Shown here: positions 1 to 61,108 of the stretch, in pieces
How positions within the stretch are numbered: the stretch's first letter is position 1
How the letters are laid out: every line of letters starts with the position of its first letter
From: Dimorphilus gyrociliatus
Taxonomy: Eukaryota > Animalia > Annelida
Reading direction: 5' to 3'
Assembly (NCBI GenBank): GCA_904063045.1
Contig: CAJFCJ010000007.1
Span: forward strand, 2,115,404 to 2,179,403
DNA length: 64,000 nt
Translations under genes and position numbers: made by a program
Notes under the pieces: generated by a model
The model's database searches: none
Seen by the model: the letters and a program-made list of their open reading frames with translations, nothing else
Told to the model about the DNA's origin: nothing

Positions 1-72
1 ATGGATTTAATGGGAAAATCCTCCCTTGCCGGACCCGGAGGAGTAGTCTCAAATCGTCAAAACGTGTCATGA
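1..72 (+). CDS. probable 3' end of a gene extending left of the window (..MDLMGKSSLAGPGGVVSNRQNVS*)
   Basis: GC-richer open frame 1-72 ends in TGA. It is followed by AT-rich UTR-like sequence with AATAAA near 354. No family recognised. Confidence 0.3.
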   Translation: MDLMGKSSLAGPGGVVSNRQNVS

Positions 73-627
73 AGAACTTTAGATAGCAGAAAAGCTTAAA
101 AGTCAAATGTCAATTGCTTATTGTAAACATTTCACCTTTTTTCCTCTTTTCTGTTTAATCGAAAACAAACTTTATTTTTAATTTTATCAATTAATTAGTT
201 AATTAATTTAGATATACAAGAATGAATATTAATTAGATGATTTATGAATATACATATATTTTGGCAATTTAGAGTAAGATAATGTTTGACTGTTTGAAGT
301 TTATGTAAAATTTCTTCCATTTCTCGGTAAAGCAAGGTAGATGCCGTTACGTTAATAAACTTACAGAGCCATCTATATTAAACGAAGGATGAGGTTAAAA
401 AAGTGAGTGCATCTTTTCATCATCACCGATCGTTAGTGCAAACGAGCATAATTCTCTATTAGTTCCGTCTACCGAAAAAATATGCTCAATTGACGACTTA
501 ACGAGGCGTCTAGGCGTTTCCCTAGTAGACCAAAAAAGAAATCTCCGGCATTTTATTCGTATATAAGCATTTTTTTGGACGGAAAATAGGCCTAGTCGTA
601 GGAGAATAAACGGTCGCCGTTAGGCGA

Positions 628-635
628 TGACGTCA
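628..635. promoter_or_regulatory. palindromic CRE (TGACGTCA) upstream of the calmodulin-like gene
   Basis: Exact CREB/ATF consensus inside a CpG-rich patch (~500-720), about 210 bp before ATG 845. Function is inferred only. Confidence 0.35.
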
Positions 636-844
636 AAGCGTCTCTTTGCTCATTCGCAGTCTGAAAATGCTCTAAGTCTAAATCTCGTTTATGTCATTAA
701 ACGTGCAAAATAATCGGCGTTATATTCTTCAACAACTACTTTTTACTTCGACTCTTTCTACTATTTCTAATTCTTTTGTTACTTTTATTATTACTATTTT
801 TGCTATTAGAATTATTTTGCGAAGATAAGCAGAATCGTGACAGG

Positions 845-3800
845 ATGACGGCGTCTGACATTCAGAATCGAATATTAGAGATCGGAGAACGAATTAGGAA
901 TACTTATAATCACGCGTTTGCAAGATTAAAATTGGCCTTCAAAAGTGACCAGTTTAATAACGATTATTCTACTATAAAAGTCCTACCTGGATTTTTGCAT
1001 GGATTATACCCGTTTTTAAGCTTGGGATGTAATACTAATAGTCTCATTGCTATCAGTTCAGCAATGACGAATCCTTCCACATCACTGACCTTTGCTAGTT
1101 TGTTTGACGAAGAAACCGCCCAGAAGATTCATGGTAAGAACAGTTTTCATTCTTCGCAAGCAAGTCTTTTTTCCGTTTCAGTAGCTTTTCTTTTTTTGTT
1201 GTGCAAGTTTATCTTCTGTCTTACTAACTATTAGCAAACTTAATCACAAATCTTTTAAACAATTGATATACTTAAATCTCTTTTCATATTATTTTTGTTT
1301 CTTTTAACGGAAAGAGTTTATCATAAATGTCTGTCTAGTGAAAGCCAAAAATGAGCGTATTTTACTTAAGCGCCGAAGTTTGTCACGTTGAAAGCTATTA
1401 CTTCATTTAGTTGGCTTCAGAAATCCGAGAAATGAGTGGATGCTCCAGGCATGCACGACAGTGTTCCAGCTTTACTTTTTCGCCAAACTGGCGTGTTTTC
1501 TTTTCCCTCTCTCTCTCTCTCACCCTCTCTCTTCGTTTATTATGAACAGGGATACAATTAGATATAAAACAAAGCCACAAAGCTATTGAAAATATAAGCA
1601 AAAAGTATACAACGGTTATAAACATGTATGAAAGCGATACTAGGCGAGAGCAGAAACTGCTTCTATCAGCACGAAACGTGTTTCATTTCATTTTAAGTAA
1701 ACAATATAATTAAACTTGAACTTTACAATGTCTAATAGATATTTTAACGCTATTAGTCATTGTCATTTTCTGTTCAAGTCTTATTCAACTTATACCACAC
1801 TTGAATTAGAACGACTTTTCCAAATCAATTAGGCTAATTTGTTTTCACTTTTCCTTATAGAAAAGCTTTGCAGAAGTCGAGGGAAAAGCAATAATTTCTT
1901 TCTTGTCCCGAAGGGGAATCGCTTAATTCAGAATATATGTACAATTTGCAGAAAAAAAAAGAAGAAAGAGACTTAAATTTGACTACGTTATCTCTGTCTC
2001 TCCATCTCTCTGTCTCTTACTCCTTAGTAGTAGCAATTAACGTAGTCTTTACACATTTCAATTGCAATCACAAGTTTTAATATATTTTAATATAAAGAAA
2101 ATCATGAAAATCCAAAAAAAAAAAAATAGAAAAATAAACAAACCCTCGATTCTCTTTCGAATTAGGAAAAAGGCAGGAATTATACATTCTATAGAAAACT
2201 ATAACAAAGCGTATTGATTGACTAGAATGATATCAGGCAACGGACCATTTGGTTTTTTTCTTTTTTTTTTTGAAGGTATTGAAAATTTTAAACTTAAAGG
2301 AAAAAAAGGAACAAAAAAAAACAGATAGGAAAGAGAAAGGATGAAAAAAAGAAAAAAGAGTGAGAAAGAGAAAGAGAAGGATGAGAAAAATAAGAGAGAC
2401 AGTGGAAAAAGTATCTCTCGGAACTTTCCAATTGGAAGTCTTTAGCACAAAAAAAAAACAAAGATTGAATGTTTTTCCTTTTTTTTTTATATATTTTCCC
2501 TTTTTTCGTAATTTCTCACTATCAATACAACAATTTATAGAGTAAGAGATAAATAAGTGAATGTTTAGAGTGAGCATATCTTTTTACATAGAGTTTATGT
2601 ACTGTATGCTGTATTGAGATTGGAACTACTGTATATGTGTAATAGAACAAGTGCATTCTGTTTCTAGTACAGTTTTTGTTCTAAAAGAAATATCGGTAAA
2701 AGTAAAAAAAAAGGAAATTACTTTATTCTAATTAGTTATTGAATACACTCTTTATTCTTCTTAATGGGGAATATTTTAAATAATATTTATCAACCTCCAA
2801 GCCTACAATCCAAGGAAAAGACCCGCATTGAATAAATTGAAATAATTATCAAGGTGACATCGTTTTATATTCCTCTTAATAATAGATGTCAGAATCATAG
2901 TATATTTTGACACAATTTTCCTCTTTCGCTCATATTATGCTGCTCTTCCTTTTCCTTTATCATAAATTCAGAAAGGATAAGGATAATAGAAAAAATAAGG
3001 AATTTTTTATCATTACACTTTGCTTAATATACTTGTGTACTCAATTATTACATCTTCTCAATCAGGTGCATTTATAAAAATACTTTTCTTTGTAATTTTT
3101 TTTATTATTAAAAATGTCTATATTAAAAATATACATTGTATTAAAATTCTATATGTATATACTATATATATATATATATATTAGATATATTGAATTATTA
3201 CTATTCGTTCTTTTATTAGAATATTCAAATGAGATCCTTAAGAATTTGTATAAATTTGTTTACAATAAATCCTTATGATAATATTCTATAATTTAGAAAA
3301 TTATCTTATTACAAACTTTTCTCTTTCAAAGATATACTAAAATCATCTTTCGTGTATATGTTTCTTTTTTTATAAATAATACGCCAACAATCGTGCTTTA
3401 GAACAAACTATTCGTGATGTATGACTTTAATAGCTTGATCATGACCTCTGATTGAAGTTGTGTTTGTGAATAGATAAATATATGTACTTTTGTCACGCGC
3501 TATTTTATCATTTTTTCCGGTATTAAAGGATAAATAGCCAGTATGCGTTTGTGAAAAGTCCTCCCACTTTTTCCCCTTTGCTTATCCTGATTGACTGGAA
3601 AGGAAAGAGGCAGAGAAAAAGTATTCACGGATTCTAGTCAGCGTCAAATAGCAATTTATTGTTCTTGATCAGACGGTAATTTTACTACTGGCCCTAGTTT
3701 TTTACTGACTGCGAAATGAGAAAGTCTATTCGATAAAAGTAGAAAGGGCTCTTATTAAACTAGTTTTCATTCCACATCAGGAATTTCCTTGAAGAAGCGT

Positions 3801-5446: not shown

Positions 5447-7795
5447 AGCACGACAGAACTTTTAAAAGTGATTTTAAAAGGAGACAAAAATGGCAAGCAG
5501 TCGGCTTGAGGCGCCTCATTATAGGGACAAAGACTTTGTAGAAAGTTTTCTCTTCAAATCTTCATACCTTAAATCTCATGCTGGTTTTATGTTAACTTTA
5601 AAGAAACGAAGATCGCCCAAAGGTCGTTGACGCTTTTGCCAAAGGATGGTTGCTATTCCTTTCATTTCTTTATACATACATATATCTCTTTTATTTGTTT
5701 ACGCCTACCTCTGTTTTATATTTAAAGTTTTATTTCCATCAAATTTCTACATAATTGTTTATCTTATGTCTGTCTTTTTCTATCTCCTCTTCCCTGTTGG
5801 CAAAATATTTATAAATTTTGTTGATAAATCTATGCAGACAGTTGTAATAGAAATGAAAAAACAAACAAACAAACAAACAAACAAAACAAACATACAAATA
5901 ACAAGCGGTTTTCCTATAAAAGTCTTTAGTCAAAGGCATAGTATAGGATGTGGAAGTTGTAGGATATTGCGATTCACTCAACCAAAACTCAATTTAACTT
6001 TCCTTTCTGGTTATTCAATTAATTGCATTTGTTCCAATCAAAGTGGTGTTTATAATATTGACGATAAAAAATTCATTTCAATTTATTCTTCCTTCCTGTC
6101 TTTTTTTTTATTTTTTTACAGTTTCATTCACCACAATGTCTCTTTTATTTTCATTGAGATATTTAACGGTTTGCATTCAAAAAGGCAATTACTCAATCTA
6201 TTATATTTAATTATGTTACTGGAATAATAATCCATATTTGTAATACATTATAATAATACATAGATCGACACTATAAAATTTTATTAAGGCTTCTTTTTTG
6301 TTTTTTATTTGCTAACCACCTGACATACTATATCCGTCTATTCTCCACCTACCAGCCTTACTAGCGTCACCATCAATTAAGCGTTTCTTTTTATCTATCA
6401 TATGTACTTAATGTAAACGCTGTTTTCTTTGATACTGATAATACAGAATTATTCGGTAAATGAACCTCCTGCGTGACGTCTTCCAATATACAAAGGGATG
6501 TTTGTCCAACAAAAAGTTAATTAACATTTTGTTAAATAAGAGAAAAGATGGATTTTATCCTTTTAAAAGGTTAATAAATTCTGTTTCGGATTTTCTAAAC
6601 CTATCAAATTTTTTCTTGGAATGTATTTTCCAACTTTTCATTGTCATCATCAAAGAGCAAAAGTAATCTTAATTCCGAAAGGAGGAAGGGAAGAAGGAAG
6701 GGGGATTCGAGGGAAAAAGAAAAGTAATGCTAAGAAGACTAGTTAGTGGAGATATGATAGAGGGAGGATGAGGAGAATGAGGAGAAGGAGAAGGAGATAA
6801 AGAGAAAAAAAAAGAGAGAGAGAGAGTTAAAAAGAAAGAATTTCATCTATCTTATATACCTTTATCGTTTTACAACGGAAAATAATACCACTTTCTTTTT
6901 TCCCTTTTTATTATAATTGCATTATTAATTAATTTTTTTCCTTAAAGAAATTTAGTTATTATAAAATAAAATAAAAAAAAAAAACTATGTACTTAAGAGA
7001 ATCCAATACCTTTGATCTTCCTCTAAAAATAGCTTTATGACTCTTCTCACATTGAACAAAATTTGGACAGTAATTTAAGCTGTATTTGTACTTTTATATA
7101 GATATATATATATATTAATTTATGAATTATTAATAATTCTTTAGTGCAAAGTAGATGTTTTTTTTTAAAAAAAAAAAAATAAATAAGTTTCGTTCCTTTT
7201 TTTTATTTACTTGCCTATTGATTCTATGACTAAGAAGAAGTTATTCGTTTTATGCATTATCTGTCTAATGTACAAGTAAGTTATATTGATTTCAATACGG
7301 TGAATGTCACTCAAAAGGAATCAATATAACATCTAAGGGCAAACACCTGCGCTTCTGCATAAAGCGATGGTTGTTTATTTATTATTTATAAGTTGTCTGA
7401 TTAAGTTTGCCTAGAAACGTTTGTAATTTCAGTGAGTTATATTGTCAGGTTAGGATCTAACTACGATATGAGATTTTTTGTTAGAGGATTTAAATTCTAT
7501 TGTATGATGACGCTTTTAAAGTCACGTTCCGTCGTGCCATTTAGGAAAGTGGACATGTAAACTTCTTTGCTAAGTGCGTGAAATCTCGCTGTGAAATATT
7601 TTTTTCCGTCCCTTGATACGATATCTTAAATTATTCTACGAACGCAGTGCTTTCATTTATCCTAGAAACCAGACAACTTCAATGACACATCAAACTAATC
7701 GAATAAAAACGTTAATAATCAAAACAGAAAATTACATTATCAGTATTTTATTGAGTAAGAAGATATGATATGTCTTGGAATTAGAACTAGTACTT

Positions 7796-7801
7796 TCTCT
7801 C

Positions 7802-7842
<41 letters not shown>
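7796..7842. repeat. (CT)n/(CTGT)n microsatellite
   Basis: Direct reading of the sequence. Confidence 0.9.
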
Positions 7843-8913
7843 TGTATAAATACAGCATACAGTCTTTTAATATCGAGATCTATTGAGCTGCTTTAGAAGG
7901 AGCTAAAAACGAAATATTAAAATCATCTATTAATACATTTTCCAAACCAAGACGTCAATAACAATCTACTTTTTTGGCTAATGAATTAGATTTTCAAAGA
8001 GAGCCAGAGAGCAACTGAAAATAGTGACAGAGAGAAACGTATCTGAGAGGTTGTTTACTTTCACTTTATATCTTTGATATAGATGTTTAGCAACGCTTAA
8101 TAGAGTTACAAGAACGATTGCTGTTTTCATTATATAAAAGGATGTAGCTTAAGTAAAAAGATAAGTTTTGTCTTACAAACGACCTTGAAGTTCGTTTGCA
8201 CCGCAAAGACTTTACAACATACCTATTTCTTCGTAAAAGTGGCTAGGTGACACCTATCGGATAAACAGGATGGAATTTTCTGAATTATTTATCTATCTAT
8301 TACTCCTATTATTACATGACTATACTTATATTTGAATATTTTTTCAACAAAGATAGAGGATAAATAGTTTCCTCCTATTTGAATTTCTTCATCTCACATA
8401 GTTAATAATTTCATTCCTAAGCTTTCTTAATTTCAATGATGACGTCATTAAGAACAAAAAAAAAACACTTATATTGTGATATCATGATTTCATTAACATG
8501 TTAAATATATTGATATTACATAATATAGAAGAAGAAAAAAGATAAGCAAAGCTGCTTTTGTCCATCTCTTACGTCTATTATTTATAGACTTTCTTATATT
8601 CTTTTATACTTGTATAGTTATTATATAATTAATTTTATTTAATGCTTTTATGTCTCTTCTTCAAAAACTAAACGTAACAGAATACAAAAGGATATAATAA
8701 TGTTTTACAATTTAGAAAGAAACTTATTTTATTTGTTGTTCTTTTATGATTAATCTATTTTTTCTTTTACTATTTATACTTCTGTAATAACTCTATATAT
8801 TTCTTTAATCATAGTTTCTGTGTATCTGATTTACTTAGAATATTATTTTAATGATCAAAATCATCAAAGCTTATGTTTCTCTTCATTCAAAACTAGAAAT
8901 GACTTCCCCCTCT

Positions 8914-53273: not shown

Positions 53274-55235
53274 TTAATCATCATACGTTTGAGATTGTTG
53301 TAAAAGAAGCATGGTTAATTCATTTTTGTTTATCTTTCCATCTTTATCAAAGTCCCACTGATCCAGAATCGTCTTTTTCATATATTGGATATCGTCACTA
53401 TCATATTCACTTTGAACAAGTTCCATTAAGTCCTTTAAGAAACCATTTAGTTCCTCATTTTCTATACATCCATTACTGTCCTAAAAGAACGACAAAAATT
53501 AATGATCGTTAGATTTGACCTGACAATGTCAAATATAAAGAGAAGATGTACTTAAAGCCTGCTTTACAAGTATAGCGTAAACTTAAATATTGAATATAAA
53601 GAAGAGAGATGCTAAATATCTTTTATCTTATTAATATATTTATTCAAAAAGCTTCTTAAAACCTATTAAAGAATTTAATAACAACTTTTAAACTAGATGG
53701 TTAGAGACTAAAGGTTTGTTAATAATTCTACTATTGCTTTTTTTTAGTAATGAATTAATAATAGAATTTACCTGACCATTTTAATTTTAGATATATTAAT
53801 AATTTAATAACTTACAGTATCGTACAAGTTGAATACGCTGTCAATGTCGCTTGCGTTCAATTTTTTGGAGACCTTTTTAAACAAAAGGTAAACATTTATA
53901 AATATGAAAACAATATGCGTCAGCCTATTTTCTACTACTAATTACTAATTAGTCATTTAAATAAAAAGTTAATTAAATATATGATAATTATAATAACTAA
54001 CATTACTCATTTTGAATATAGGTCTGCACAAGAAATTTTCTTTTACGGGTAATAACCTGGTTTATTTTAAGAAATTTACTAGGTATTATTAGTAGCTAAT
54101 TGAGGCCTAGTATACGTACTTAGCCATTTCGCTCAACTGTAATTTCCCGTCTTTGTTCTGGTCAAAGAGCTGCAACTGAAATCAATGAAACGTTAGGTGA
54201 ACTAAAAATAAAAGGAAAGGAACTAAACGAAAAAATAAAAAAAAAAAAAAGGTAAAAAGGAAGGGTAAAAATGAGTTCGAACCATTGTTGTTGTGTACTC
54301 TAATAACTGTTCTTCGGTCACTTGATCCTCTCTGTTAGCCTCTTTTAAAAGATCTTCAAGAAAATCCTGTTAAAAAGAGCTTCATACAATATTATTCTAA
54401 CACTTTTTACATTTGATGTATTACTTGTAATCATATTATACTTTTCTTTATAGTTTACTCTACGATAATGAAAAAGGGGGATAAAGTTTTATACACACTT
54501 TTAATTCATCAGCTTCGATATATCCGCTACAATCCTTATCAAATTCTCTCCATACTCTCATAAATTCAACGCTAGATGTTAATGGATTTTTGAAACGGAA
54601 TAGTAAAAGAAAGTTTTCTTCAGTTGGTAAAATTTGCGCCATTTCAGAAATATCTATACGATCATCGTCATTCTCATCAAAAGCGTCCAAGAAACGCCCT
54701 TTCATATATTGAAAAGAAGTTTCCTGCATAATATTTCTTAAAGTTAATTAATTTAATGCTATATATAATACAACACACAATAATTATATAATCTATCATA
54801 CATATATATTAGGTTTATATAAATATAGTAACAAACATAAAAACAAACAATGATTAGACAAGTGAAAAATCGAATATAAAATTAAAAAAGAAAACAAAAA
54901 ACTAGTTTTTATTTTAATTTCAATATAAAAACGTTCGATTTCGTGTTTTTTCATTCCCTAGTTGTTTTTATTCTATAAAATACAATAAGCTAAATGTTAC
55001 AATCGTCGAATTCGCTTCCACTAAATTATTTTTTAGAAAGACCTTAATCGATTTCAAGTAGGAGTGAATTATCGATTCGATCGAAACGCCTATTCAACGT
55101 GAAAAATAAAAGGAAACATACATCGAAAGGTTGGGTGTTGACCATAAATTCCTTTAAGAAGGCGTCTAATTCGTTACCTTCTATGAAACCGTTACCTGTT
55201 TAAAATGAAAAGTAAAAGAAGGAAAGAGACAAGAA

Positions 55236-55267
<32 letters not shown>

Positions 55268-55680
55268 CAACAGTAATAAATATTTTTTCTTTATAGACTT
55301 TTCTTGAATGTAAGTTAAATATTGTTTACATGCATTAATAAGTAGGAATAAGATACTTTTATATACGTTTTTTTAATAATCCCATAAGGAATATAATACT
55401 AATAAATAGCGTGTAAAAGGATTAAAAGTTTATTCTTTTCTTCGTTTTTCTCCTAAAAAGAATAACTTAGTTAGGCTACAAAATCGTGGGAGAATGATTG
55501 ATTTTTATGCTTTTCGTCAGTCACTTTCTACTTAATTAAAAAGGTATATAGGAAAAAGAAATTACCATCTACGTCATAATGACTCCAAACGTCAATGAAT
55601 TGACTAGCTGTAACTTTTCGTAACTGCATTGTTGTTTCATCACGAAATTGTTTTAAAAAATTCTCTCCCTTTTCCGCCAT
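53274..55680 (-). CDS. Cbp53E: hexa-EF-hand calcium buffer, calbindin-32/Cbp53E/secretagogin family, 290 aa
   Basis: Exons 55680-55566, 55195-55122, 54723-54499, 54366-54283, 54175-54120, 54056-54002, 53872-53816 and 53480-53274 (873 nt). Motifs [48 protein letters not shown] and LLPVKENFLCR. Confidence 0.9.
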
Positions 55681-55720
55681 CCGACTCGCCAGCCAGCAAA
55701 AAGCGAAAGATGTTATAAAT

Positions 55721-55730
55721 GCGCCACCTA
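55721..55730 (-). promoter_or_regulatory. CTCF-like motif (TAGGTGGCGC on - strand) between the calbindin and tubulin start codons
   Basis: Direct motif match; function inferred. Confidence 0.35.
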
Positions 55731-55823
55731 TACAACGATTTTATCATTAAACTCTTTTTCTTTTTTTTTAGTTTCGATGACATAATCAATCGTTTTAAAA
55801 TCGATAAAAACATCTCAACAACA

Positions 55824-57179
55824 ATGTCATCGAGAGAGATTTTATCCATCCATATCGGACAGGCTGGTTGCCAAATGGGAAGGGAATTGTGGGAATTATA
55901 TTGTTTGGAACACGGAATTACAAAAGACGGGTATTTAATAAAAGAAAGTGAACTGGAAGATATAGCTTTCGAGTGTTTTTTTCAAGAAACCTCTTGTAGG
56001 CAGCACGTTCCTCGTTCATTATTTGTTGATCTTGAACCTTCAGTGATTGATGAAATACGTCGAAGTGAATTTCAGAAACTTTATCATCCAAGTACTTTAC
56101 TTGCTGACAAGGAAGACGCCGCAAGTAATTTTGCCAAAGGTTACCATGGATACTCCTTAAATTCATCTTTTTTTGAAAACGTTTCTGACAGCATTCGCAA
56201 ACAAGTGGAAATTTGTGATCACCTCCAGGGCTTTTTTGTCTTTCATTCGTTCGGTGGAGGAACAGGTTCGGGCTATACGGCTAAACTTCTTGAAACGATT
56301 ACGCAGGAATTTACTAATAGAATACCAAAATTCACGTTTAGCGTTTATCCGTCGCCAAGACTATCATCAGTAATTGTTGAACCTTATAACGCACTGCTAA
56401 CGACCCATACCTCATTCGATTATACAGACTGTTCAATACTGTTCGATAATGAAGCGATCTATGACATATGTCATAATCTTCTGGAAGTTGAAAGGCCGTC
56501 ATATTTGAATCTAAATCGTTTAATATCTCAAGTTTGCTCCTCAATAACTGCTTCTATACGTTTCGAAGGAGTCCTTAACGTAGATCTACACGATTTTCAA
56601 ACAAACATTGTGCCGTTTCCCCGCCTTCATTTTCCTTTAGCCTCTTACGCTCCCTGTTTGCCTGACGCCAATGTAAAGCATGAATCTCTTACGGTTCCAG
56701 CTATTACAACCTCTGTTTTTGATCCAGCAACACAGATGGTTAAATGTGATCCATGCGAAAACAAATTTATGGCCTGTTGTATGCTGTATAGAGGAGATAT
56801 TACTCCTACCGATGTAACAAATGCTATTCAAAAAATAAAGAATAGTAGAAAAATCAGGTTTGTTGATTGGTGTCCTACCGGATTTAAGATTGGTTTGAAC
56901 CATCAAGCACCGTCGTCTGCTCCTGATTCTGACATTGGAGGCGTTCCAAGAGCGGTGTGCATGCTGTCAAATAATACAGGTATTAAGGACGCCTGGACAC
57001 GTTTGACAGGAAAATTCGATATCATGTTTCATAAGCGTGCGTTTGTCCATTGGTATATTGGAGAAGGAATGGAAGAAGCAGAATTTTCGGCCGCCAGAGA
57101 GAATTTAGCAGCTTTGGAAAAGGACTATGAAGAAGCAGCTTGCGATACTGTTGATCCAGTTGTCGAAAAACATATTTAG
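55824..57179 (+). CDS. TUBA: divergent intronless alpha-tubulin, 451 aa
   Basis: [86 protein letters not shown]. Alpha-type hallmarks ([18 protein letters not shown]). Confidence 0.93.
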
Positions 57180-57226
57180 TACACCATAACAAGCCAATTT
57201 CCAATCTTTTGAGTCAGCAAATTCTA

Positions 57227-57946
57227 CTAAGAGCTCATAGTAGGGTGCAGATTATTTTTCGTATTCGAAATAAGTAGAGCGTCTAATTTATTCGTGCAGT
57301 TTCGTACCGTTTCTTTCATGTTCTCAAAGCCTAATCTTACACTATTTGAATAGCGAACACTACGATTCCATACTTGCACATGTCCGATTTGTCGCCTATC
57401 TATAGGCGCGAGCACTCTTTTCGATTCAGGCACTCCTCTTTTAGTGGGACTTGATAATCTATTAACTGCCTCTTTGCAGGTGGTTGGCCTCGCTAGTTGA
57501 CGATTTGACGACGTATCTGCTGACGACTTACGATCCTTTGGTAATTTCAAATTTAACTTTGCTGAACTTGGTGGAGGTACCGGAGCTATAATGGGAGCTG
57601 AAAGTGTTTCCCTTGCTCTAGAAGCCGCTGTTGAACGTGTAAGTCTGTCAACTATTTCGTAGAGCCTATCAGGATCTAAAGTTTTTCCTCTTTTTCTTCT
57701 AGAAACTTTTTTTCCCGACTGAGGTTTTTCTTTTTTTTTCTTTTTCTTTCTTTTCACCGTCGGCTTCGGTTTTCTATCAATGCTGCTGTCTGTTTCCTCA
57801 TCCGTCAATAGCATAGGATCATAGACAGCAGCTAAGTCTTTTTCACTCAATTCAACATCATCTCCACCTTCTTTTTTAATTCGAAAATCTATAAAGTGTG
57901 TATCGTCGTCCCGTTCAAAAATTACAATTTCAGGATCGTCCGTCAT
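57227..57946 (-). CDS. uncharacterised intronless protein (acidic N-terminus, poly-Lys patch, basic Ser/Pro-rich tail), 239 aa
   Basis: Uninterrupted 720-nt ATG-to-stop ORF with coding-like GC content in a gene-sized gap. No family recognised. Confidence 0.75.
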   Translation of the reverse strand: MTDDPEIVIFERDDDTHFIDFRIKKEGGDDVELSEKDLAAVYDPMLLTDEETDSSIDRKPKPTVKRKKKKKKEKPQSGKKVSRRKRGKTLDPDRLYEIVDRLTRSTAASRARETLSAPIIAPVPPPSSAKLNLKLPKDRKSSADTSSNRQLARPTTCKEAVNRLSSPTKRGVPESKRVLAPIDRRQIGHVQVWNRSVRYSNSVRLGFENMKETVRNCTNKLDALLISNTKNNLHPTMSS

Positions 57947-58205
57947 TTTTTGTGAAATAGAGCTAAAGCTGTTTAGACCATTTAATCCTACTATTCAAAT
58001 TCTCAATATTACAAGCTGATAAATTTATAGCTAGTTTTGAGACACAGATCGCCTTTGTTTCAAGTGTTCGTATGCCTTAGCAACTGCCCTACCCGTAAGT
58101 CTTTTATGTCAAGTTATAAGAGTTTTATTTATTCACGAGTTCAATAATTCATCTAAACAATAAGGTACATAAATAGAAGGTTCGATAACTATGTTATTTT
58201 AACCA

Positions 58206-58869
58206 TTAAATAACAGCGTCGGCGATAGGATTTGCGTGTATCCTGACGTTCTTAATTCGAACTTCTTTATGTGGTCTGTAGGTTTTTTCGTTTACTTCAA
58301 GTTTTTCCAAGTCATCAAGAACATCAAAACCATCGATAACTTTACCAAAAACTGTATACTTCAAATCGAGGTGTGGTTGTTTAGCGTAAGTTATGAAAAA
58401 TTGTGATTTGTTCGAATTAGGCCCTTTGTTGGCCATTGAGATCATACCGCGACAACTATGCTTGACGGATTCATCGAACTCGTCATCAAAAGGTTTTCCC
58501 CAAATACTTTCTCCGCCTTTACCAGATCCTGTTGGATCTCCAGTCTGAACCATAAAACCTAAGACAAATTTTAATAGGTTAAATACGTATTACGAACGTT
58601 AGCGGTTTTGTATTTTTGAATGCTTTACCTTTTATATTTCTGTGAAAAAGACAGCCATTGTAATATCCACTTGCACAAAGTGCCAAGAAATTTTCGCAAG
58701 TTTTTGGAAATAGTTCGCAGTATAATTCTAATTTTAGGTCCCCGTATTCAGTATTTAATGTAACTGACTGAAACGAGCGATAATAAATGTTAAATTGAAG
58801 AATTAATGAAACCGGCAAAAAAAAACGTAAATAATCCACACACGGTTATTTCTAAAAAATACCAACCAT
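58206..58869 (-). CDS. PPIL3: peptidyl-prolyl isomerase-like 3 (cyclophilin), 164 aa
   Basis: Exons 58869-58867 (ATG|gt), 58767-58629 and 58558-58206. MSVTL..[61 protein letters not shown], IHANP. Confidence 0.95.
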
Positions 58870-59098
58870 TCTCTTATATATTTAAATAGGTTTAGATGCG
58901 ATAAAGGCTCAAAATAAAACGCCGGTTATTTTTCAAACGCAAGGATTTAACGAAACTTTATTCACCAGTTTTCTTGCGGTACATAAGAGAAAAATAAAAA
59001 CGTAAACGCTAACGCCATCTACAATCGAAAGTATCTGACTGTAATGTAAAATGTCTTTTTACAACAATTAAAAGTTAATTTAAAAACAGAACTGGTAA

Positions 59099-61108
59099 TT
59101 AACAATCAAAAATTCGGTGATAGCCTATATGTTTGCTATGATTTTGAACTTCAAACATCTTTTGAGTGTCAATACTTGCTAGTTTAAGCTTTTCCAACTG
59201 CCTTTCGCACTTTCGTAAGCCAGGGGGTTCTTTCACTTCGTACTCTATTTCAAGGATATTCTCTCCGTTTTCTCTTAATAATTGGACGCAAGTTTTAAGA
59301 TTCTCTTTACATTCTTCTAATAGACCTGTTTGTCCACAATTAACCAGACTTTTCATCTGTTCAATACACTGTCTTTTGCAATTAGCAACTTCATATGAGA
59401 AATTCGATTTTTCATTTCTAAATAATTCATTAAGTTTATCAAGTTTTCTATTGTCTGACGATACAGTTGAAAGATATTTTAATGGATATAAGTCCAGATT
59501 TAATTCCCCTATATCAATGTTATATATTCTTTTCAAATAGTGTATAACTTTCCTATGAGACTGTTGATGGGATTTTAAAGTGAATTTTACAGTTTTATTT
59601 AGTAAATTTCCAGAAGATTCTTTAATTAAGAATAAACAATCTCTCTCCATGATATATTCTTCTAATTCATCGTTGAAAAAGTCTGTAATTACAACTGTAA
59701 TTATTTTGTCCAATATTTTTACTTTTATAACGAATAAGCAATAAGTAAACTGCATAATTTCATCAATTTCTTCAAGTTGTCTTATTTGATCGTTAAATTT
59801 TCTTTCATTTTCTTCGATGAACTCTCCAAGAAAAACTTTACGCATAAAATCAGACTCTCTCAAATTATCCGATTCGTCAAATCGGGCAAGTCTTCTATCC
59901 AAGAGGATTTGATTAATACTCTTCTCTGTATCATCTTTTAAAATGCAAGATAAACAATAGTCATTTTCCAGTTTCTTTACCTGTAATTTCAACTTTTTAG
60001 AATCAATATTTTTGAGGAAAAACGCAACGGCTCCCTGACTCCAGATTTGATGTAACGGTTGAATATGTGCCAAACGGGCTGGTACAGCCTGAGCAGGAAG
60101 TTTTAAGAATTTATCAGATAGGTGCCGAACATCACTTAAATTTATTTCTCTTATTTGACCAAAGTCGACTAGGTAAATGCGAAGAGTAGACTGAAATCGT
60201 AAGATTACACCTCTTCTCCATAGTTTTTTTAGAAACAAAACAGCGCAAGGTTTGCCCATATAAACATCGGCTGTCGTTAATCGATATCGTGTATTTATTA
60301 TTTCATCGTCGTAGAATGATTCCATCTCTTCTTGGAGAATTTCAAATTCATCTAAATTATTCTTACCAAAGATATGAATGTAAAAATCAGTTGGGCATCT
60401 CGTATGAACTACTTTAGCGAACAATGATTCAGGTAAACTCTTTACATCGATGAGATTGAAAGCTGTTTTGATAGTTTTAAGAGGATTTTCAATATTTTTA
60501 TAGTGGCAAACAGGATGATTATCTTGGTAACTTTTGTGAGGAACATAAGTAACATCTTGATTTGTTCTTAAATTTGGAACTGATTTTTGTTTATAAAACT
60601 TTGCTGTCGTCCCTCTATTCATATTTTCTTTATTATCTCTAGATGAATAGTTAAATCGTGTAATTACTCTTGTATCGAAACGCTGTGTTCTGCTCAAGTG
60701 ATATTCAGAATTATTCCTATATAATTTTCGATGTGAATAGTCATCGTTGTTGTTATAAAATACCTTCTTTTCAAAACGGACACCTTTTTCCGCTCTTTTA
60801 GAAAAATTTGAAGCTTTTTTCTTTTGTCCAGCAACTAGTTTTGCTATATGCCTATCTTTTTCACTGGCTACCGCATAAACGAAAGTGGCTCCTTTAATTT
60901 CTCTTAACCGTCCTATGTTTGGATTCTTTTGAAAAAACTCTGTTGCATTTTCGTATCCCATCTGTTTAAATGGAATAGGTCGGCACATAAAATCCTTAAA
61001 TGCTTTGTCTAGTTCCAATAGTGTCTGGCCATTTGGAGCAGATACTAAAAGTGCTCTTATCTGCTTTTCAATTTCTTCAACCTCACACTTCTGGAGTTTC
61101 TTGTTCAT
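59099..61108 (-). CDS. TDRD5: LOTUS (OST-HTH) + Tudor domain germline protein, TDRD5/Tejas-like, 669 aa, intronless
   Basis: N-terminal LOTUS (IRALLVS..L.ELDKAFKDFM.RPIPFKQMGY) with the extended-LOTUS helix DRHIAKLVAGQK. One extended Tudor/SN-like unit (VHTRCPTDFYIH..KKLWRRGVIL..IYLVDFG..FLKLPAQAV.ARLAHI). Orthology to TDRD5 versus TDRD7 is inferred from architecture. Confidence 0.78.
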   Translation of the reverse strand: MNKKLQKCEVEEIEKQIRALLVSAPNGQTLLELDKAFKDFMCRPIPFKQMGYENATEFFQKNPNIGRLREIKGATFVYAVASEKDRHIAKLVAGQKKKASNFSKRAEKGVRFEKKVFYNNNDDYSHRKLYRNNSEYHLSRTQRFDTRVITRFNYSSRDNKENMNRGTTAKFYKQKSVPNLRTNQDVTYVPHKSYQDNHPVCHYKNIENPLKTIKTAFNLIDVKSLPESLFAKVVHTRCPTDFYIHIFGKNNLDEFEILQEEMESFYDDEIINTRYRLTTADVYMGKPCAVLFLKKLWRRGVILRFQSTLRIYLVDFGQIREINLSDVRHLSDKFLKLPAQAVPARLAHIQPLHQIWSQGAVAFFLKNIDSKKLKLQVKKLENDYCLSCILKDDTEKSINQILLDRRLARFDESDNLRESDFMRKVFLGEFIEENERKFNDQIRQLEEIDEIMQFTYCLFVIKVKILDKIITVVITDFFNDELEEYIMERDCLFLIKESSGNLLNKTVKFTLKSHQQSHRKVIHYLKRIYNIDIGELNLDLYPLKYLSTVSSDNRKLDKLNELFRNEKSNFSYEVANCKRQCIEQMKSLVNCGQTGLLEECKENLKTCVQLLRENGENILEIEYEVKEPPGLRKCERQLEKLKLASIDTQKMFEVQNHSKHIGYHRIFDC

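Follow-up and report, generated by a model that had tools for sequence, protein, structure and literature searches.

The glutamate at position 254 of alpha-tubulin (E254), which activates GTP hydrolysis on the beta-tubulin below, is regarded as invariant. In FtsZ, hydrolysis on the adjacent subunit is activated by an aspartate of the T7 'synergy' loop (NxDxxD), at the place of alpha-E254. FtsZ is a prokaryotic homopolymer with another interface geometry; it shows that an aspartate can be catalytic at this position, but says nothing on how fast it would be in a tubulin lattice. Among animals, C. elegans TBA-6, human TUBAL3 and Drosophila alphaTub67C are cell-type-restricted alpha-tubulins with non-canonical tails that serve specialised arrays; to our knowledge, all three keep E254 and are far less divergent than the dinophilid protein described below.

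The exchange of E254 for aspartate has been characterized in engineered human TUBA1B, in which E254D made lattice hydrolysis approximately 4-fold slower than the wild-type rate of about 0.2 per second (Roostalu et al. 2020, eLife, PMC7018511). The mutant lattices also showed longer EB3 comets, almost no catastrophes and readier nucleation (PMC7018511), and the biochemistry cited in the initial annotation of the present locus agrees with that paper. All literature found on E254D in tubulin concerns engineered human tubulin, and a natural case was not found there. A natural change of the GTPase-activating (GAP) residues has been described in the coccidian alpha3-tubulin, which has T at 251 and Q/H at 254, an N-terminal insertion (MPREI), unconserved H1-S2 and M loops and an aberrant tail (PMC10056924). 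Morrissette et al. (2023, PMC10056924) propose that its GAP activity is slowed or missing and that its polymers are stabilised.

The DNA examined here (the window) is a stretch of 64,000 nucleotides from GCA_904063045.1, the published genome of the annelid Dimorphilus gyrociliatus (PMC10735302), and contains an intronless gene for a divergent alpha-tubulin (contig CAJFCJ010000007.1:2171227-2172582, on a scaffold of 4.62 Mb). The only long open reading frame of the region (55719..57179, plus strand) encloses this gene, homology to tubulins begins at the ATG at 55824 (MSSREI...), and this ATG is taken as the start because the orthologue described below has an in-frame stop three codons 5' of its own ATG. 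The same stop rules out the ATG at 55719, and the 35 extra codons that it would add are not protein. The 451-residue translation is free of stops and contains an intact GGGTGSG signature (FGGGTGSGY, residues 143-151), just as the initial annotation had described. Coordinates of the main features are collected in Table 1.

Table 1. Features of the divergent alpha-tubulin gene and its upstream region, in window coordinates.
Feature	Position	Strand	Basis
Intergenic region/5'UTR, 194 nt, shared with a divergently transcribed EF-hand gene (ATG at 55629, minus strand)	55630..55823	.	
Divergent alpha-tubulin coding sequence, intronless, 451 codons plus stop	55824..57179	+	translation, Pfam, PDB matches
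N-terminus MSSREI (canonical MREC(I)); two-residue insertion displacing the TTC5 tetrapeptide, kept in the orthologue	55824..55841	+	
Two-residue insertion H108 G109 just past the T3 loop; T3 loop with N101S and Y103F	56145..56150	+	alignments
GGGTGSG tubulin signature (T4 loop), intact	56253-56273	+	translation
T7 loop/helix H8 motif; equivalents of N249 and D251 kept, T253 to H, E254 to D	56574..56606	+	alignment
Codons CAC GAT, H256 D257 (canonical 253 and 254); CAC GAC in the orthologue	56589..56594	+	direct indexing
C-terminal tail, short and non-acidic, without a Glu-rich tract or terminal Tyr	57138..57176	+	translation, alignment

Several lines of evidence assign the protein to the alpha-tubulins. 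Both Pfam domains were found well above their gathering scores (Tubulin, PF00091, 1.1e-54; Tubulin_C, PF03953, 6.4e-42), and all hits in the protein database were alpha-tubulins. By using phmmer against all PDB chains, the best 60 of 172 matches were found to be exclusively alpha-tubulins (E 1e-183 to 1e-170), with alignments spanning residue 4 to about 445, that is, end to end. The alpha-specific S9-S10 loop (canonical 357-371), which contains an 8-residue insertion relative to beta-tubulin, is kept at its full length with no gap against alpha chains. Domain content, affinity to alpha- over beta- and gamma-tubulins, the GGGTGSG signature and the length of the S9-S10 loop are therefore those of an alpha-tubulin, and only the E254 feature is missing. 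An AlphaFold2 model from a shallow, low-diversity alignment of 31 sequences was uninformative on the fold (mean pLDDT 44.6, pTM 0.42).

The missing residue can be read directly from the DNA, in which CTA (L255) is followed by CAC at 56589-56591 (H256) and GAT at 56592-56594 (D257). In the phmmer alignment to solved alpha-tubulins, H256 and D257 stand opposite T253/E254 or N253/E254. Thus, of the canonical catalytic pair, the equivalent of D251 is present, while E254 is absent and replaced by Asp in both the window tubulin and its orthologue. The E254D substitution named in the initial annotation is confirmed at the same two codons. The second-best PDB match, 9smx (chain 9smx_BA), is a TUBA1B that reads LNVDLTDFQTN, and judging from its own sequence we take it to be an engineered E254D protein.

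Natural D254 is very rare. Among the best 120 database hits, which contain 138 copies of the motif, HD at 253-254 was found only in the window tubulin and its orthologue, and the remaining 136 copies, in 118 of the 120 hits, have E at 254 (dipeptides: TE 115, NE 16, LE 2, AE 1, SE 1, IE 1 and HD 2). When 241 million JGI metagenome records were scanned for DNA coding for NVDLxDFQTN, three loci emerged (L004, L005 and L006), one of which is a tubulin gene. This gene (L004; protein P0121, Ga0127508_1010163, 38-1450, minus strand) is GC-rich and encodes a 470-aa alpha-like tubulin reading LNVDLADFQTN, whose identity is 49% with the annelid protein (BLASTP) and about 57% with canonical alpha-tubulin. 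It resembles the annelid tubulin in its natural D254, its divergence and its lack of an acidic tail; on the other hand, its GC-richness, separate long branch and singleton status set it apart. A database search for relatives of L004 that might form a second D254 lineage found none above about 60% identity, leaving it an orphan. L006 was rejected as a chance match. L005 (Ga0126334_10037370, 300-335) was also rejected as a tubulin gene, as its contig has no ORF of at least 80 aa; its exact LNVDLGDFQTN coding stretch lies after a possible splice acceptor (ttacag), runs into non-tubulin sequence and a stop, and could be either a chance match or a degraded tubulin relic.

In a word-indexed search of 5.8 billion proteins, the closest relative of the window tubulin was a protein of 471 aa with 85% identity (P0010), encoded on contigs of three independent Logan assemblies (SRR23372228, SRR23372229 and SRR23372216). 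All other hits were at most about 60% identical, and orthology with TBA-6, TUBAL3 or alphaTub67C is not indicated. With regard to the words themselves, the 5-mers VPFPR, PFPRL, FPRLH and PRLHF also occur in beta-tubulins, and canonical alpha-tubulins share 5-8 words. The window and the P0010 locus have a common gene order, namely EF-hand, tubulin, an approximately 240-aa Lys-rich gene, cyclophilin (PPIase) and Tudor/OST-HTH, and P0010 carries the same LHDFQTN as the window tubulin.

The alignment of the two coding sequences spans 451 codons without a gap; it has 54, 26 and 196 differences at codon positions 1, 2 and 3, respectively, and no frame disruption. By the Nei-Gojobori method, dN was 0.088, dS 1.47 and omega 0.06, a ratio that is approximate because dS is near saturation. 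The cyclophilin exon next door has the same omega (0.061), and the values are higher for the Lys-rich (0.107) and Tudor (0.102) genes. The saturated dS, along with only 84% identity of the cyclophilin exon between the two species, indicates a deep species split. The Asp codon differs synonymously between them (GAT and GAC), and canonical positions 244-273 (T7-H8 and H8-S7, with the catalytic loop inside) are 100% identical. As far as the two species compared can tell, the tubulin gene appears to be under strong purifying selection. A survey of orthologues for D254 and dN/dS had been suggested in the initial annotation, and D254 turns out to be kept in the syntenic orthologue at an omega that rules out relaxed selection.

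Transcription of the gene could be followed in public sequencing runs. Run X3 (organism A, 2017) contains six joints with CT..AC ends, corresponding to minus-strand GT..AG introns of the neighbouring genes, and is therefore considered RNA-derived. The run includes a 1263-nt contig (depth 54) that agrees with the window at every position of 55562-56824, and the CAC GAT codons reported in the initial annotation thus recur in RNA-derived sequence. Nearby intron stretches have depths of 0 and 15, compared with 54 over the tubulin, and DNA carry-over thus does not explain the signal; such assembled contigs show the presence of a transcript rather than its level, strand or tissue. Lack of expression is ruled out by this contig together with the RNA contigs of the spliced neighbours. 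Moreover, two marine metatranscriptomes, X1 (coral) and X2, contain pieces of the divergent part of the gene (182 nt and 175 nt, about 99% identical, with 2 mismatches each), and the spliced EF-hand transcript is also present in X2. Compared with window positions 54100-59900, both datasets contain pieces 98-99% identical to several D. gyrociliatus genes, and the worm or a very close relative therefore inhabits the sampled coral/marine systems. Stage-specific expression was also sought in the supplementary files of the D. gyrociliatus genome paper, in which neither tubulin nor the scaffold is mentioned.

These data bear on the question of whether the locus could have arisen from an error of sequencing or assembly, from contamination or as a retropseudogene under relaxed selection, to which its high divergence and its lack of introns (the neighbours have introns of 70-400 nt) might lend some colour. 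Such an origin is scarcely credible, given the same H-D in an independently sequenced relative in three runs, the conserved synteny, a 4.6-Mb host scaffold on which the gene lies among spliced annelid genes, an RNA contig identical at the site, the low omega and the excess of third- over second-position differences. A base-call error in particular is ruled out by the H-D of the orthologue and the zero-mismatch RNA contig. The gene would have originated by duplication, and its absence of introns is suggestive of retroposition without proving it.

The substitution at 254 is embedded in a highly altered protein. In a comparison set drawn from animals, fungi and protists, the 92 canonical alpha-tubulin domains were 76-100% identical to the reference (median 94%), whereas the window tubulin was only 52-58% identical to these domains, with about 43% of positions differing. 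The initial annotation had placed the change in an otherwise intact ORF; the reading frame is indeed intact, but at this level of identity the protein can hardly be called a normal alpha-tubulin. The canonical set has 228 columns conserved to at least 97%. The window protein or its orthologue departs from them at 52, and at 37 of these 52 both species show the same replacement, including N18R, N101S, Y103F, H107Y, E254D, L259I, Y262F, A281V, R308C, K326T, E420A and D424N. E254D is accordingly one of 37 shared replacements at near-invariant positions, and not an isolated change.

The changes are unevenly spread along the protein. Identity to the canonical consensus is lowest in the H3 region (29%), M loop (31%), S9-S10 loop (33%), H1-S2 loop (37%) and H10 (44%), most of which are lateral-contact and lumenal elements, and reaches 71-78% in T7-H8, H8-S7, H10-S9 and H11-H12. 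The H1-S2 loop is 2 residues shorter than usual and has Ser or Thr, with no Lys, at the K40 position. In tubulin autoregulation, TTC5 recognises the tetrapeptide MREC/MREI (PMC10403363), which is displaced at the N-terminus here. The tail of the orthologue is 20 aa longer and unrelated in sequence, and likewise non-acidic. Therefore, the features of a canonical isotype, namely at least 76% identity, an acidic Glu-rich tail ending in Tyr or Phe, MREC and K40, are all absent from this protein.

In a quick maximum-likelihood tree (LG+C20), the two dinophilid proteins were grouped with 100% support on a stem branch of 1.97 substitutions per site, with terminal branches of only 0.13 and 0.20 and a median canonical branch of 0.13. 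The pair stood apart from the other two long branches, the second domain of a Fasciola protein and L004, and its placement beside a Caenorhabditis sequence is probably due to long-branch attraction. Such branch lengths form the pattern of a burst of change that then gave way to tight constraint. The Fasciola sequence (residues 251-701 of P0075) belongs to a fused gene model of Fasciola gigantica, whose second half is a divergent alpha-tubulin about 59% identical to canonical ones. It has a non-acidic tail as well as N101S and Y103F (DAASNFARG) in common with the dinophilid protein, keeps E254 (LNMDIAEFQTN) and forms a separate long branch in the tree.

On the basis of sequence conservation and of analogy with the human mutant, these observations may be read as a functional, transcribed alpha isotype that, as far as the databases show, is restricted to the Dimorphilus lineage and would hydrolyse slowly and form a stable lattice, a reading to which we give about even chances. 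According to the proposed mechanism, the gene would have been duplicated and passed through a burst of change before strong purifying selection set in. The protein would still pair with beta-tubulin and enter the lattice, since the longitudinal interface strand, N249, D251 and GGGTGSG are kept. The shorter carboxylate of Asp would then activate GTP hydrolysis on the beta-tubulin below more slowly than Glu, and where this alpha-tubulin is incorporated, the GTP-like lattice would be longer-lived, catastrophes rarer and nucleation easier. The remodelled lateral-contact loops (H1-S2, H3, M loop and S9-S10) and the loss of K40, the acidic tail and MREC suggest that it might build a specialised, long-lived microtubule array outside the tubulin modification code and mRNA autoregulation. 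The sites of use proposed in the initial annotation (axoneme, centriole or sperm structures) are conjectural, and if anything, the missing acidic tail speaks against a conventional axonemal role.

A different account of the catalytic site should be considered, in which Asp would work at the normal rate through a co-evolved interface (T253H, A247V, K326T and others). Selection would then have acted on lateral contacts or protofilament number, or on escape from tail/K40 modification or from TTC5, and E254D would be a tolerated passenger that was later locked in. The strongest remodelling does lie in H1-S2, H3, the M loop and S9-S10 rather than in T7-H8, and the native catalytic Asp of the FtsZ T7 loop indicates that Asp can support hydrolysis in the superfamily. 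The position of E254D as one of 37 shared near-invariant changes also fits this account, and for the same reason the behaviour of the human single-residue mutant is not directly transferable to the annelid protein; with about 43% divergence and the adjacent T253H, the geometry of the active site may be compensated. On the other hand, the invariance of E254 in the other 136 motif copies implies that a change of E to D is normally not tolerated, and T, N, A, S, L and I all occur naturally at 253, so that H253 need not be compensatory. In addition, the single change in human tubulin clearly slows hydrolysis (PMC7018511). Taken together, we consider compensation less likely than slow hydrolysis.

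A role outside the lattice has also been weighed. The protein might bind beta-tubulin or microtubule ends and serve as a terminal or capping subunit, a component of a non-microtubule polymer or a buffer of beta-tubulin, in which case its catalytic residue would be under different constraints. An identity of only 29-37% to the canonical consensus in the lateral-contact elements and the absence of the tail used by motors and MAPs would be in line with such a role. However, the longitudinal elements (T7-H8, the interface strand and H11-H12) are the best-conserved part of the protein and hardly differ, if at all, between the two species, which makes a non-lattice role less likely; M-loop H283 is kept as well, and constraint on the catalytic loop would be odd if the protein were never placed above a beta-tubulin E-site. 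Overall, we regard this possibility as quite improbable.

With respect to a slow-hydrolysing lattice subunit, a further proposal is that the GTPase-activating residue has been attenuated and not destroyed, yielding a selected, encoded microtubule stabiliser or GTP-cap extender that escapes tail/K40 modification and TTC5 autoregulation. This proposal is put forward tentatively. The annelid tubulin and TUBA1B E254D agree in the residue change itself and in the catalytic position that it affects, and both keep D251 and N249. However, the human protein has one laboratory substitution in a canonical isotype, whereas the annelid protein is natural, selected and approximately 43% different, has His at 253, and is without K40, an MREC N-terminus and an acidic tail.

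By published description, the Toxoplasma gondii/coccidian alpha3-tubulin resembles the annelid protein as a natural, lineage-restricted and divergent isotype with altered GAP residues, an insertion in the regulatory tetrapeptide at the N-terminus (MPREI as against MSSREI), unconserved H1-S2 and M loops and an odd tail. In alpha3, both D251 and E254 are replaced, the catalytic site is probably dead or shifted and the tail is very long, whereas the annelid protein keeps D251, has a conservative change of E254 to D and has a short tail; moreover, one belongs to an alveolate and the other to an annelid. Shared descent is very unlikely in view of the annelid-restricted distribution, and the likeness consists in a combination of features. 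The annelid isotype and alpha3 together suggest a set of changes that recurs, namely an altered GAP residue, disruption of the autoregulation motif at the N-terminus, changed lateral loops and a non-canonical tail.

The natural E254D isotype is both rare and real, with a conceptual precedent already in Apicomplexa, and its presumed activity is judged by analogy. A residue regarded as invariant is thus replaced by a naturally fixed and selected Asp in an animal, implying that in specialised isotypes evolution can tune the catalytic residue itself, beyond tails and MAP-binding surfaces. The protein offers a natural counterpart of the laboratory mutant for studies of GTP-cap size, lattice expansion and stability, and if hydrolysis is indeed slow, it would provide a natural in vivo system relating hydrolysis rate to cap size, lattice spacing and stability. 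This importance is tempered by the divergence of the protein, which bars reading the effect of Asp straight from the human mutant.

Besides the tubulin itself, its surroundings show several further features. The block at 55576-55835 takes in the first coding exon of the EF-hand gene and the start of the tubulin coding sequence. It shares about 91% identity with the orthologous locus (L001, approximately 7676-7947), while flanking synonymous sites are near saturation, and this conservation suggests strong constraint on a bidirectional promoter or 5'UTR. The block contains TTCCGCCATC, GCGCCACCTATACA and an ATCAATCGTTTTAAAATCGAT element. The EF-hand neighbour is secretagogin/calbindin-like.

On the other side, at window 56879-57946, the tubulin gene is convergent with a minus-strand, Lys-rich gene of 239 aa, and in the relative the coding sequences of this pair have 44 nt in common (L001, 9308-9351). 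There may thus be antisense overlap at the 3' end of the tubulin gene. In X3, a further RNA contig of 4158 nt (depth about 620) joins part of the tubulin 3' coding region to the 239-aa gene, the spliced cyclophilin gene and the Tudor gene. The latter, two genes away from the tubulin, is a single-exon Tudor/OST-HTH gene on the minus strand (59099-61108, 669 aa) of a TDRD5/7-like, germline type, and it evolves fast between the two species (58% amino acid identity, omega about 0.10).
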